A DNA stretch of 64,000 nt, from positions 930,001 through 994,000 of the forward strand of contig NW_026889764.1 in the NCBI RefSeq assembly GCF_033153115.1, in the 5' to 3' direction. Every line of letters starts with the position of its first letter. Positions within the stretch are counted from its first letter, which is position 1. Shown here one piece after another: positions 33,091-40,439 of this stretch. The notes beneath the pieces are model-generated. The model searched no databases. It was not told the origin of the DNA and was given only the letters and a program-made list of their open reading frames with translations. The DNA comes from Saccostrea echinata (Eukaryota). A program made the translations under genes and the position numbers.

Positions 33091-35836
33091 ATGGTAAAGT
33101 ATATATATCAGAAATACGGAGTCTTCGGCACAACCTGTGTTTTTATCCTATTCATTCTTGATACAACTTCTGCACCGTCAGTAAGTAAATTTAATATACA
33201 TTAGAACTTAATAATGCATTTCGTTTGTTCAAATAGTTAAATTTAAATAAGACCATACCCAGAGGCAAAATCTGCAAACTTCTGACTTAATTTTTTAATT
33301 GCACAAAAAAATATCACAGATAGATTCATCTCTCTTAGCGTTTACAAATATAAAATGTAATATTTGTCTCCATGACAACCTCAGATGAATCGACAGCGAT
33401 GAATATGAGAAAATTTTTATTCATAAAATGATTACATAGTCGTTTAAATCGTAGCTGCAGAACTGTAGCTCTTTGCTTGAGAAAATTCGGACAAAGCTTT
33501 GTCTGTTCGAATTTTCTCAAGCAGAGAGCTACAGTTCTGCAGCTATTTAAATCGATGTTTAATCGACTATTCATTCGACTTCTTCAAAAAAAGAATCATA
33601 ATGCATGCTGATCCTGGTTCAGCTTCGAAAACACAATGGGTATCTTTTAATACACAAAGGCTTTTCAGCTTTGTATTTAGTTATGTCCCGATCCAAGTGG
33701 TTTTTTAAAACTTCGATTAAGATGGAAAGAATTTGATGGCTAAAAATGTAGAATTTTGAATATGCTTTAAAAGCTTAGCATGAAAACCCAGGAACTTAAG
33801 TAGAATTTCGTTGACCCCAGAGCAGCAATCGTTTATCATATAAATATAGGACATGATAAAACTTGTTAAACGCATCTCATCTTCTTTTTTTCCGTAAGTG
33901 CTTTTTATCCTAGAGATGCATATTTGAAAGAAAATTTACAAGCCTTATTTTTAAACAAATAAATGTGTTTAAAAAATGCGATTAGTTTTAAAATTGAATA
34001 GGGGATTTGCCAGGAGGATTGAACCATGACTTTAAAAATTCTAATCATCTGGGCTATACTGACAATGAAACTATTTTGTATAAATATGAACCAGATTGTC
34101 AAAACTTGTTTGCTTATTTTTCGTAAGCATTTTGTGAATTGGTCAAAGCGTCAACATGATATTCAAGTGGCCATGCCATCAAGATGTTCCTTACTAATCG
34201 AAACTTACATAAATCGTTATAAGAGATTATTAACCAATTTTAATTTCTGATTTAGCAGCATGAAGTGTGGAAATTTAAAAAGTTTCCTATCAATGAAACC
34301 GGTGGGGACTATACATGTAGGTTTCCTACTCGTCTGTCCTTCTTTCTGTTTGTCAGTCTGTTCTTCTTGTTTTCAGCCCTTTTTTTACTAAACGGGCTGA
34401 TTTTTGGTATATGAGTATACCTTTATGGGTTACAGACCCAGTTAGCATTGCATTCCACTTCGATGATATTTGATGGAATTATGGCTTTTTTATTTTCGAG
34501 GGAACCAGATTACACTTGCCGGTAGAAGAATAGTTTTGCTTTAGCAATATTTTCAGAATGTTTGTTTATTTTAAACTTCATTAACTTTGTTTGAAAGTTA
34601 CGACAATTTTTACGAATGGCTGTTGATGATAAAGAAAAGTTAAATTGAGTCCATTGTGTATTAAGCTTATATATCTATTTTCAGAATTTATTTATAGCAA
34701 TGTTAAAATAAAAAAAAACTTCTTTCATAATCACTCGGAACGATATTATTTTTGTCCCTCGATAGTATCGATGACCTTCAAAAATGCTGCCTTTGGCCTC
34801 GGGTATCAGTTTTCCAGGTCTGCCCTTCTAACTCGGGACAACAGTTTAACTTTTTTTCGTTGTCATGAAATAAGCGTATTGTACATAAAAAATATAACCT
34901 CAAGTTTATAACTTGACCCATTTGACTGACACGAGTAAACGTCCTATTGTTTTTACAAAATTGCACATCCCAGAACAGAAGACATTCTCAGCTTTCTGGA
35001 AAATATCGCCTTTGATAGAACGTAAAGATTGGAAGCATGGATCTGGCTACATGCATTTCTTGAAATTCAGCATTTGTTATTACCCGCTTTATCGTCTGTA
35101 CTTTGGATCATCAATTACAACAATATTCCTGAAAATTATGAGTTTTAGTCATACATTTGATTTGAATTTACAAAATACCATGATTTTATAAAGATTTTAT
35201 CTTTACAAAATATAAACATATTGTAAATGATATTTTTTCCAGGCATATAACTTTGCCTTTAAAGTGTTTCCTGTAAAAGAGTGTCGATGAGCAAAGAAGA
35301 TTGGAACATGGCAGCAGCTCGCTTGAATTGTAACACAACGCATGGATACCACTGCGTCCCTGATAAATATTTTACATCGCTCATTGAATTCTGTTATCCC
35401 CAGGGCTATAGGTTGNNNNNNNNNNNNNNNNNNNNNNNNNNNNNNNNNNNNNNNNNNNNNNNNNNNNNNNNNNNNNNNNNNNNNNNNNNNNNNNNNNNNN
35501 NNNNNNNNNNNNNNNNNNNNNNNNNNNNNNNNNNNNNNNNNNNNNNNNNNNNNNNNNNNNNNNNNNNNNNNNNNNNNNNNNNNNNNNNNNNNNNNGTCCC
35601 TCTCGAGAATTTTTCACTCATATGGAGACGCCACCACTTCCCGGTGGAGAGCTGCAAATTTTCTCCTATACTCGGTACTTACGGCAGTGAGGGATCTTTT
35701 TCGTGCCAGCACCTACTGTGACACGGGACCTCGGTTTAAACTGTCTCATCCGAAGGACCGGTCTCGTCGTTCCAAAGTGGGATTCGAACCAACGACGTAA
35801 GGATCAACTCCTTATACCGCAAATCTAGAGCAGACG

Positions 35837-35923
<87 letters not shown>

Positions 35924-38722: not shown

Positions 38723-38804
<82 letters not shown>

Positions 38805-40439
38805 AGGTGTGTGTATCCATTCCATCGCTGCTGCATCAGATTTAAACTTCCGTAAACTTCATATTGAAGTAAGACATTTTTTGCCGACTTTCCCCTTGAT
38901 TTTTCGTTATAAATATATAGTAATAATTTGCACATGTTCATATAATTTCCTGATTATTTTTCAATTTATTTAGGAAATGCTACAGCAATCTTAATTTCTT
39001 TACCAAATTTTGATAATGCTTCACAATCTAGCCATAATGTTTAAGCTATTTCATCTTCAGAATATGAAACTGGAATAGAGGATAACAAAAGTTATGTATT
39101 GGTAGAACATGAAACAAAATTGGAAGAAGATGAAGCCGAAAGACCTCTCATGGACGGTAAAACAATTATCAATTTATATGAGAAAACAGACGGAGAGGAA
39201 GGAAACGAAAACCTCAGGAAAATACACAAAATTATTACCGATAGTGATGAAAATGGATTTGATTCTTTTATCGGTCATCTTGATAATAAAACGAGTCTTC
39301 TTGAAGAAACAGATGCCCGAGGATTCAACAGTTTACATCTTGCTGCTAAAGGGAGTAAGCTTAAAATTTTTGAGAAGATAATTGAGTGCAATGTGCGAAT
39401 TGATTCAAGGGTGGTGAATGATGGACGCAATTGTTTGCATATAGCTGCTAATCATGGAAACTACCAGGTCTGCGATTATATTCTGAAAGATTATAAAAAC
39501 TTATTTAAATGTAAAGACAAGTATAACATGAATCCTGCGCATTGGGCGGCATTAGCAGGAGAAACGCCTATTTTGGAACTTATGATGACACGTGGTTGTG
39601 ATTTGTCCGAGAAAACAGAAAAATATGAAGAAAATATTGTTTTATTCGCTTGCATGGGGAAAAGTTTACCAGTCTGTGAATTTGTTTATTCCAAAGAAAA
39701 TATTGCTTGGGTGTTAAAAGCAAAAAACAGGGAAGGTTGGAACTCAATTCAGTACGCAGCAAAAGCTGGAGATCTTGGCGTATTCAAGTTCCTTGTTGAA
39801 AAAGGAGTAGATATTGCAAATAAATCAAATAAAACTGGGAAAAATTGTTTGCATACAGCATGTGAAAAAGGTCATGTCGACATTTGTAGGTATATTTTGG
39901 AAAAAAGTCCGGAATTAATTTATGATGAAGATAAAAGTGGACAACATGTTGGACACTTTGCAGCAAAAAGTGGAAACACTGAAATATTAATGTTGCTTTT
40001 AGAAAAACTGGATATCGATGATTTAAGGAAACCCACTGCTGATAATATAAATATTCTACATGTAGCGTGCAAATATGCAAGATTAGAAATGTGCAAAATG
40101 ATATCTGAAAAATTTCCTTCTTTGGTACATGAAATGACTGAAAAGGGTTGGCAGGCTGCTTTATTTATCACTGAACGAGCCGGGGCTGAAAATGATCGAA
40201 TTCATATTTTGGAGTTTCTCGTTTCGAGGCATAATCTTGATGTTTATCATGTATCAAGATCGGGGAAAACCATTCTGTATAATGCTTGTGTTAACAGGTC
40301 ACCTAAACTTGTGAAGTATTTGTTAGCAAAATATTCAGACTTACCAGATATTGAGAAGTCCATGAACCCGTTCGAGGCAGCAAAATCAAAAGAAATCGAT
40401 AACATTGTTCAAAGGCATTACCAAACAAAAAGTTCTTGA
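33091..40439 (+). CDS. TM-ankyrin receptor-like gene copy 2 (signal peptide, 10-Cys ectodomain, TM, ankyrin repeats); exon 2 disrupted as assembled
   Basis: Phase-consistent GT-AG exons: 33091-33180 (MVKYIYQKYGVFGTTCVFILFILDTTSAPS), 35243-35415 + 36075-36087, 36294-36404, 37203-37272, 37650-37849 (TM), 39061-40439 (ankyrin). Intron phases 0,1,1,2,1. Confidence 0.85.
33452..33545. repeat. Near-perfect palindrome in intron 1 of copy 2
   Basis: TAGCTGCAGAACTGTAGCTCTTTGCTTGAGAAAATTCG ... CGAATTTTCTCAAGCAGAGAGCTACAGTTCTGCAGCTA. Confidence 0.8.
35416..35595. other. Assembly gap (N run) inside exon 2 of copy 2
   Basis: Run of N directly after ...GGC TAT AGG TTG. Confidence 0.99.
35596..35921 (-). 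mobile_element. SINE (second subfamily) followed by (TA)n microsatellite
   Basis: Aligns with the 10118-10397 copy. (TA)n at ~35840-35920 replaces the 5' tip. Confidence 0.78.
37650..37849 (+). CDS. Stalk and transmembrane exon of copy 2
   Basis: ttctttcAG acceptor, G|GTAAAT donor. Encodes LIIVTTLLTAIIISLLILAAFIYV followed by RRYKWRRKQ. Confidence 0.88.
38031..38380 (-). mobile_element. Full-length tRNA-derived SINE in last intron of copy 2
   Basis: Close match to 3807-4154. 14-bp TSD AAGGTAAAGGTAAG at 38015-38028 and 38381-38394. Confidence 0.88.
38724..38804. repeat. (TA)n(GA)n compound microsatellite
   Basis: Directly visible. Confidence 0.95.
39061..40439 (+). CDS. Intact terminal ankyrin-repeat exon of copy 2
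   Basis: tcatcttcAG acceptor at 39059-39060, in frame with ORF 39099-40439. About 11 ankyrin repeats (GFNSLHLAAKG, GRNCLHIAANHG, GKNCLHTACEKG...). Confidence 0.92.

Follow-up and report, generated by a model that had tools for sequence, protein, structure and literature searches.

Notch is a single-pass type I receptor with a cytoplasmic array of seven ankyrin repeats and no catalytic domain. Ankyrin repeats also occur in Kidins220/ARMS, which combines N-terminal repeats with four transmembrane helices and a KAP NTPase, and in the PP6 subunits ANKRD28/44/52, which are soluble. STAND NTPases, including the nSTAND3 type, form a class that is tied to immunity and cell death. Oysters, which to our knowledge have no adaptive immunity, are known for huge lineage-specific receptor expansions. 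One such expansion in Crassostrea virginica, whose proteins combine a cysteine-rich region and a transmembrane segment with DED and TRADD-N domains (together with modules such as a STAND NTPase, an AIG GTPase or ankyrin repeats), has been read as a sensor of external stimuli (Kaur, Iyer, Burroughs, Aravind, eLife 2021; PMC8195603).

Here we analysed a gene in a 64,000-nucleotide stretch of Saccostrea echinata DNA (the window), and compared it with each of these systems. Like Notch, it would encode a single-pass type I, non-catalytic protein with a cytoplasmic ankyrin array. Unlike Notch, it has no EGF, LNR, RAM or PEST match in Pfam, carries about ten repeats instead of seven, is unrelated in sequence and gives no sign of cleavage-dependent signalling. 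With Kidins220/ARMS and the PP6 subunits ANKRD28/44/52, from which NCBI takes the names of some relatives, the only common feature is the ankyrin repeats: the window family has a signal peptide, one transmembrane helix, C-terminal repeats and no NTPase.

The proteins described by Kaur et al. are alike in being oyster lineage-specific and type I, with an unnamed Cys-rich ectodomain, one transmembrane helix and swappable cytoplasmic modules of immune type. They are unlike in that the window gene has neither DED nor TRADD-N, with DED also missing from its close homologs, and the Cys-rich regions can be compared by description only. Furthermore, none of the 16 DED matches in the genome is a neighbour of an ectodomain exon, each being on a different contig or megabases distant, and the proteins of Kaur et al. 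are absent among the 45 and 150 family matches listed. A search with the cytoplasmic part of P0177 for a link to the TRADD-N family returned just one ortholog.

Exon structure of the locus

We found that the six-exon, + strand model proposed in an earlier note on this DNA holds in outline. The features of this copy (copy 1) are as follows, with identities given relative to P0001, a predicted protein of Saccostrea cucullata.

33091-33180, + strand: exon 1, start codon and putative signal peptide, 30 codons, ending in phase 0; 74% identity to the P0001 N-terminus
35243-35415, + strand: exon 2, readable part, start of the ectodomain with Cys 1-4; 88% identity downstream of a frameshift
35416-35595, no strand: run of N (assembly gap or masked), hiding the 3′ end of exon 2 and the first part of intron 2
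36294-36404, + strand: exon 3, ectodomain Cys 5-7, phase 1 in and phase 1 out; 84% identity
37203-37272, + strand: exon 4, ectodomain Cys 8-10, phase 1 in and phase 2 out; 100% identity
37650-37849, + strand: exon 5, glycosylation-type stalk, transmembrane helix and basic stop-transfer motif, phase 2 in and phase 1 out
39061-40439, + strand: exon 6, acidic linker, about ten ankyrin repeats and stop codon; 85% identity

AG and GT sites are present at all readable junctions (the donor of exon 1 is GTAAGT at 33181), and the phases, 0, then 1, 2 and 1 after the exon 2-exon 3 junction that is hidden by the N run, are compatible. P0001 matches the exons at 74-100% identity, collinearly and on one strand, and the exon set is far beyond chance. 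The exons were searched singly, and full-length homologs were used in place of the spliced product.

The signal peptide, the transmembrane helix with its basic motif and the ankyrin array are all present at the locus, in exons 1, 5 and 6 respectively, as had been claimed. The first two were assigned by eye and from hydropathy: exon 1 has the basic residues, hydrophobic core and small-residue end of a signal peptide, with a hydropathy peak at residues 1-28 of the homologs, and in exon 5 the basic stop-transfer motif comes after a hydrophobic stretch of about 24 residues. Exon 6 is the sole long ORF of the gene (458 codons); its Pfam match is Ank_2 (E 2e-41), and only ankyrin families were found there.

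The ten-cysteine ectodomain proposed for the gene is recovered with reservations. Ten Cys codons are spread across exons 2 to 4 and the signature CP...W...C...Y.C.P...EFCY...GCP... is present in these exons, but the first Cys lies upstream of the frameshift, so that the signature is split between frames after Cys 1, and the end of exon 2 falls in the N run.

Transcripts and homologs unite the ectodomain, membrane and ankyrin exons

Next we looked for transcripts that link the ectodomain and transmembrane exons to the ankyrin exon. A public contig of 278 nt (X1 record 1) joins exon 4 to exon 5 (37271/37649, cut +1) and exon 5 to exon 6 (37849|39061), exactly at the predicted GT..AG sites, and spans all of exon 5 at 98% identity. 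Because the DNA of exon 5 is found only once in the genome, this contig does not come from a retrocopy, and the window copy appears to be transcribed. Contig coverage at exon 6 is likewise confined to the exon, as it is for the whole run, at a very low depth (about 3-4). Exons 2 and 3 have no contig coverage in the public runs, which are few and available as contigs only.

The same order of parts is found in other oysters. More than 40 predicted proteins from Saccostrea, Crassostrea and Ostrea, together with short cDNA-like contigs, have a signal peptide, the ten-cysteine ectodomain, a transmembrane helix and about ten ankyrin repeats, and full-length homologs of 640-735 residues occur in Saccostrea cucullata, Crassostrea gigas, C. 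virginica and Ostrea edulis. The contigs (2.3-2.9 kb) encode uninterrupted proteins of 640-700 residues and are too short for introns, hence cDNA-like. Taken together, the spliced contig, the full-length homologs and the cDNA-sized contigs place the signal peptide, ectodomain, transmembrane helix and ankyrin array on one transcript, as the earlier note had it.

One could suppose instead that the model is a chimera, in which the ectodomain and transmembrane exons come from one gene and the ankyrin ORF from its neighbour; exon 6 is the only long ORF, and ankyrin-only fragments of 400-480 residues are common among database entries. We regard this as extremely improbable, given that exons 4, 5 and 6 are joined in the spliced contig, which contradicts a two-gene reading, that the phases are compatible and that both parts occur together in the homologs and cDNA-sized contigs described above.

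A frameshift in copy 1 and a dead tandem copy

Copy 1 carries a deletion of one nucleotide after the first Cys codon (~35284-35286), in a Cys-Pro-Met stretch, where three paralogs keep the base in a DNA alignment. Since this deletion shifts the frame, a reading from the ATG meets a TGA at 35288-35290, 16 codons into exon 2. Two details of the earlier reading of exon 2 fall here: its bracketed 'P' is absent from the DNA and stands over the deletion, and its 'PFAEG' at the end of the exon lies inside the N run, the probable source being a paralog with PFEKG. With both a frameshift and a gap in exon 2, copy 1 as assembled cannot encode the full protein, and it may reflect either a null allele of very recent origin or a local error in the assembly. 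A search of a collection of 5.8 billion proteins, in which the species appears to be annotated, returned no identical (100%) protein, and annotators may therefore have treated copy 1 as a pseudogene.

A second copy lies downstream at 46-54 kb:

46202-46388, 46729-46839 and 47118-47185, + strand: ectodomain exons 2-4, exon 2 intact
50664-50765: remnant of the stalk exon
52505-53777, + strand: ankyrin exon spread over three frames by two frameshifts and interrupted by two stop codons

On these sequence grounds copy 2 is clearly a pseudogene.

We weighed whether copy 1, too, is a recently inactivated but still transcribed pseudogene or null allele, in which case the family would be real but no receptor would come from this locus. 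The chance of this is considerable, if somewhat short of even. The lost base relative to three paralogs with its early TGA, the certainly dead tandem neighbour, the missing identical protein and the low contig depth all fit inactivation. Against it, all other readable exons are open, including the 458 codons of exon 6 at 85% to the S. cucullata ortholog, the lesion is 130 nt away from an assembly gap and errors are frequent in such places, and the loss of one base from a run of two C is a typical sequencing error.

The ectodomain

The ectodomain has about 115 residues, and all ten cysteines are at least 90% conserved in 62 sequences. Structure models reach a pLDDT of 95-98 over the ectodomain, and the domain modelled alone has a pLDDT of 91.8 and a pTM of 0.84; the model is mixed alpha/beta with five to six strands. 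Neither the ectodomain exons nor the ectodomains of homologs match Pfam at E up to 5, and the ectodomain has no sequence match in Pfam, NCBIfam or PDB. Foldseek and VIA-align searches of solved structures with the ectodomain-only model found no similar structure, although a missing match is no proof of a new fold. In the BFVD viral library the best E value was 1.4, so that nothing points to viral mimicry, for example by a protein of an oyster herpesvirus.

In line with the earlier impression, these Pfam and fold searches set the ectodomain apart from EGF, LNR, Ig, C-type lectin and TNFR, and they add Frizzled to this list. The ectodomain might nevertheless have a known disulfide-rich fold, for example one like C-type lectins or Frizzled, in a strongly diverged form beyond the reach of these tools. 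One ESM Atlas cluster with the ectodomain fold is auto-named 'FZ domain-containing protein', C-type lectins account for a few of the chains in the non-significant part of the Foldseek list, and novelty is not proven by an absent match. We nonetheless consider such a relationship improbable: the Pfam Fz and lectin models find no match at E up to 5, the model is strand-rich while the Frizzled CRD is all-helical, no Frizzled, sFRP or NPC1 chain is present in the Foldseek and VIA lists, and the lectin rows have E values of only 2-5 and TM-scores of 0.15-0.17. The new part of the protein is the ectodomain, which has a confidently predicted fold but for which neither Pfam nor the solved structures yield a relative.

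Family size and naming

Counting ectodomain copies gives at least 62 exon-2-like places in the Saccostrea echinata genome and, by profile search, 802 protein clusters (50% identity, E up to 1e-3), of which 452 are retained at E up to 1e-10, with several kinds of C-terminal partner. All named family members are oysters, which bears out the lineage specificity suggested for the gene. Of 20 paralog loci examined in the genome, with the window's own locus set aside, three have an ankyrin array within 9 kb. Within the ankyrin subfamily the ectodomain is 63-75% identical, versus 38-62% for the ankyrin array.

The family is represented in RefSeq and UniProt by uncharacterised oyster predictions of the same architecture, for example:

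P0001, 'kinase D-interacting substrate of 220 kDa B-like', Saccostrea cucullata
P0002, 'PP6 regulatory ankyrin repeat subunit B-like', Saccostrea cucullata
P0028, 'ankyrin-2-like', Crassostrea gigas
P0072, 'alpha-latrocrustotoxin-like', Crassostrea gigas
P0087, family member, Ostrea edulis

P0001 has the same exon order as the window gene and is 85% identical to it in the ankyrin array and 88% in exon 2; the window copy differs by its frameshift. These proteins are named for ankyrin look-alikes, and no name reflects the signal peptide, the ectodomain or the transmembrane helix. The description of the family as hidden is accordingly right for a prokaryote-style ORF track only, as RefSeq predicts such proteins at full length under misleading ankyrin-based names. 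No publication on the family came up in the literature, whether we searched with gene identifiers or with the architecture.

One ectodomain-transmembrane cassette with several cytoplasmic partners

The ectodomain-transmembrane cassette behaves as a module, followed in various paralogs and orthologs by an nSTAND3 NTPase (with or without ankyrin repeats), a scramblase, Ig, long disordered tails or very short tails. The nSTAND3 domain (PF20720) is present in P0159, P0173, P0263, P0269 and P0272, and in relatives of this type the transmembrane helix comes directly after the ectodomain; exon 6 of the window gene has no such P-loop NTPase. P0159 and P0173 (Saccostrea echinata) and P0263 (C. gigas) have the order ectodomain, transmembrane helix, nSTAND3 and ankyrin repeats, and resemble transmembrane STAND/NLR-like proteins.

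The STAND relatives, some of which end in ankyrin repeats, share the ectodomain with the window gene (profile E 2e-19 to 2e-16), and a structure search of the ESM Atlas independently ties the ectodomain to clusters with nSTAND3 and ankyrin repeats (TM-score 0.86 over 122 residues). The ankyrin arrays of the window gene and of the STAND relatives are only 23-30% identical, a generic likeness, and the cytoplasmic parts were therefore probably joined independently.

Proposed function

The locus is a member of an Ostreidae-specific, much-expanded family of type I membrane proteins that, judging from their architecture, probably act as non-catalytic surface receptors. The disulfide-locked ectodomain would bind an extracellular ligand, and ligand binding or clustering would alter the set of proteins recruited by the ankyrin platform. 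A setting in defence or self/non-self recognition is suggested by the tandem clusters, by the pseudogenes and by the occurrence of the same ectodomain in STAND NTPases. The stronger conservation of the ectodomain relative to the ankyrin array fits poorly with a fast-diversifying sensor, and favours a conserved ligand over an arms-race sensor.

This pattern of conservation would also suit a family of membrane anchor, adhesion or trafficking proteins, in which the ankyrin array would link a protein of the surface or of an organelle to the cytoskeleton or a fixed partner, and the ectodomain would bind an endogenous component of the matrix. The subfamily has no catalytic or death-fold domain, many family members have short or disordered tails alone, and one set is joined to a scramblase. 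We find this account unlikely, though far from negligible, because the same cassette is fused to nSTAND3 NTPases of the immunity and cell-death class, and because the family has undergone a large expansion, confined to one lineage and with tandem arrays and pseudogenes, as recognition families typically do.

Within the receptor interpretation, we put forward, tentatively and as something we rather doubt, that the ten-cysteine module is a new fold serving as the common extracellular sensor of an oyster-specific receptor superfamily, which would comprise ankyrin-tailed receptors as well as membrane-spanning nSTAND3 NTPases. If true, the latter would be NLR-like switches that sense the outside of the cell via a transmembrane helix instead of sensing in the cytosol.

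For the window locus itself the outcome is more modest, as it may be a broken copy. At the level of the family, labels such as Kidins220-like, PP6 subunit-like and latrotoxin-like mislead, and they will skew enrichment analyses run on oyster transcriptomes. Collectively, these results define one more unnamed module of the oyster receptor expansions, with dozens of exon copies in one genome and about 800 clusters. With outputs that range from ankyrin scaffolds to STAND NTPases and a scramblase behind one cassette, the family, which may include transmembrane NLR-like proteins, offers a natural experiment in wiring one extracellular sensor to different intracellular outputs.

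Copy 1 is a single six-exon gene

We found that copy 1, the receptor-like gene under study, consists of six plus-strand exons (e1 to e6) within 33091-40439, with canonical splice sites and compatible phases wherever they are readable:

33091-33180, plus strand, e1: ATG and 30 codons, reading as a signal peptide; donor GTAAGT; ends in phase 0
35243 (start), plus strand, e2: preceded by a pyrimidine tract and CAG; ectodomain cysteines
35416-35595, no strand, N run covering the end of e2
36294-36404, plus strand, e3: phase 1 to 1; ectodomain cysteines
37203-37272, plus strand, e4: phase 1 to 2; ectodomain cysteines
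37650-37849, plus strand, e5: phase 2 to 1; Asn/Ser/Thr-rich stalk, hydrophobic helix of about 24 residues, basic stop-transfer motif
39061-40439, plus strand, e6: starts in phase 1; acidic linker and about ten ankyrin repeats; ends in a stop codon

The ten cysteines are encoded by e2-e4, and e6 matches Ank_2 in Pfam (E 2e-41). As the earlier note had stated, most of these exons are absent from the ORF track or misframed in it, with e6 being the sole long ORF (446 aa).

Public contigs aligned to 35200-40439 have coverage confined to exons. One 278-nt contig from the public sequencing run X1, 98% identical, contains all of e5 and extends into e4 and e6, with joints at 37271/37649 (cut +1) and 37847/39059 (cut +2) and GT..AG at both, which are exactly the predicted junctions 37272/37650 and 37849/39061. 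This contig is the kind of spliced link to the ankyrin exon by which the earlier note had proposed to check its gene model. The run is labelled 'DNA?'; because the coverage is exon-only and the size small, its contigs point to cDNA. A processed retrocopy as the source of the contig was ruled out, since the e5 DNA is found only once in the 923-Mb genome. The ectodomain and transmembrane (TM) exons and the ankyrin exon are thus one gene. Among the aligned contigs, e2 and e3 have zero coverage.

The introns contain repeats. A very high-copy interspersed element is present at 35596-35800 (intron 2), beginning directly where the N run ends, and at 38031-38380 (intron 5); summed contig depth over these copies is in the thousands, many contigs cross-join both, and each contains a short open frame that mimics protein. 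Long dinucleotide-type microsatellites at 35831-35930 and 38717-38817 appear in the ORF list as I-Y repeats; they were passed over as repetitive when contigs were aligned.

A frameshift in exon 2 as assembled

While the six exons and their compatible phases agree with the earlier note, two details of its reading of e2 do not. The first is a bracketed 'P' that is absent from the DNA and masks a real lesion: DNA comparison shows copy 1 to be one base short where three paralogs read Cys-Pro-Met/Leu. Consequently, the frame from the ATG hits a TGA at 35288-35290, and the remainder of the ectodomain lies in a different frame. The second is 'PFAEG' at the end of e2, which falls inside the N run and is unreadable; the neighbouring paralog, copy 2, has PFEKG at this position. 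The window's own place in the searched genome G000 (locus L004, matching window 33775-36927) is not N there, so the N run may be masking and not a true gap; L004 was excluded from the later comparisons. Another N run lies at 16858-17008, outside the receptor locus. Copy 1 may be a broken copy of the receptor gene.

A tandem paralog, copy 2, and a probable third family locus also lie in the window:

46202-46388, 46729-46839 and 47118-47185, copy 2 ectodomain exons, downstream of copy 1, intact
50664-50765, copy 2 stalk remnant, separated from exon 4 by about 3.5 kb of inserted sequence
52505-53777, copy 2 ankyrin exon, two stops and two frameshifts
553-1965, third ankyrin-repeat exon, intact, 29% identical to e6, beginning with a basic juxtamembrane-like stretch

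Given the stops and frameshifts in its ankyrin exon, copy 2 is a pseudogene. The exon at 553-1965 probably forms the 3′ end of a further family member, one that has its 5′ exons upstream of the window.

Full-length homologs in oysters

The exons of copy 1 were searched one at a time, with full-length homologs standing in for the spliced product. The e6 search matches full-length proteins of 640-735 aa from Saccostrea cucullata, Crassostrea gigas, C. virginica and Ostrea edulis, all with the order that the earlier note had assigned to copy 1: a hydrophobic leader, a 10-Cys domain, a TM helix around residue 160-270 and an ankyrin array. The S. cucullata homolog P0001 is 85% identical to e6 and aligns to each window exon in turn, at 74-100% identity. 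Many e6 matches are proteins of 640-700 aa whose contigs measure just 2.3-2.9 kb; this leaves no space for introns, so these contigs are cDNA-like. No protein identical to copy 1 was found in a 5.8-billion-protein collection, which fits a locus left untranslated by annotators.

The earlier note had called the family hidden; this holds for ORF-style annotation but not otherwise, as RefSeq already predicts these proteins, under misleading ankyrin-based names (Kidins220-like, PP6 ankyrin subunit-like, ankyrin-2-like, latrotoxin-like).

The ectodomain may be a new fold

Neither as single exons nor within full-length homologs did the ectodomain match Pfam or NCBIfam, even at E up to 5, and phmmer found no match to it among PDB sequences. 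In a 62-sequence alignment all ten cysteines are at least 90% conserved, as is the signature CP...W...Y.C.P...EFCY...GCP. AlphaFold2 models the domain confidently, with pLDDT 95-98 over the ectodomain of a short family member and pLDDT 91.8 and pTM 0.84 for a 129-aa domain-only protein. The modelled fold mixes strands and helices, running from one strand through one helix and four strands to short helices. Foldseek reached only E 1.2 at best against the PDB, and a viral structure library gave no match. The earlier note had likewise seen no resemblance of the Cys spacing to EGF, LNR, Ig, C-type lectin or a clear TNFR repeat. One ESM Atlas cluster sharing the fold is auto-named 'FZ domain-containing'; we rejected a Frizzled-type reading, as the model is strand-rich and no Frizzled-type chain matched. 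The ectodomain is an unnamed module whose fold is possibly new, an absent match alone being no proof of novelty.

A cassette with modular partners

Exon 2 of the paralog (62 aa) matches at least 62 places in the genome, on many contigs (E up to 1e-3). A profile built from 26 of these 62 places retrieved 802 clusters at 50% identity from 1.84 billion representatives (E up to 1e-3), 452 of them at E up to 1e-10. Every named member looked up comes from an oyster, as expected from the proposed lineage specificity.

Pfam scans of the longer profile matches, together with TM positions, place the ectodomain-TM cassette before ankyrin arrays and before nSTAND3 NTPases with or without ankyrin repeats (P0159 and P0173 of Saccostrea echinata, P0263 of C. 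gigas, P0269, P0272). The ectodomain thus also heads transmembrane STAND NTPases, and an ESM Atlas structure search independently reaches nSTAND3 plus ankyrin clusters (TM-score 0.86 over 122 residues). In P0273 (and cluster members P0290-P0295) a phospholipid scramblase domain follows the ectodomain and TM, an arrangement that several cDNA-like contigs support. The cassette also precedes Ig domains in P0187, possibly a fused gene model, long disordered tails in P0123 and P0128, and short tails in 200-250-aa proteins; P0142 (C. virginica) has two tandem ectodomains and no TM. The ankyrin arrays of copy 1 and of the nSTAND3 proteins share only a generic likeness, so the cytoplasmic parts probably joined the cassette in separate events. 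A cassette of small, phase-compatible exons ahead of a single large 3′ exon is consistent with this.

Proposed role

For this family the analysis establishes which parts define the topology and in what order they come, that the disulfide scaffold is conserved, that the partners are modular and that the family has expanded; from its architecture we infer a function. The product would sit at the cell surface as a type I protein and bind an extracellular ligand through its rigid, glycosylated ectodomain; ligand binding or clustering would then let the ankyrin platform recruit cytosolic proteins. The sharing of the cassette with STAND NTPases would favour defence or recognition, and the tandem arrays and pseudogenes, suggesting birth-and-death evolution, point the same way. 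Within the ankyrin subfamily, however, the ectodomain (63-75% identity) is more conserved than the ankyrin array (38-62%), and this comparison of sequences speaks against a fast-evolving sensor, suggesting a conserved, perhaps endogenous ligand. For this reason, anchoring or adhesion stays a serious rival.

We found no paper on the oyster 10-Cys/TM/ankyrin family. The nearest published concept, compared by description only, comes from Kaur et al. 2021 (PMC8195603), who described in C. virginica an expansion of the type 'cysteine-rich-region + TM + DED + TRADD-N + variable immune domains' and left its cysteine-rich ectodomain without a name. Copy 1 differs in having no DED or TRADD-N, and none of the DED matches in the genome adjoins ectodomain exons. 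With Notch, copy 1 has only the general plan in common. Taken together, the analysis confirms the original observation in part and supports its interpretation in part; the architecture of the family and its lineage restriction are solid, and the family belongs among lineage-specific receptor-like expansions.
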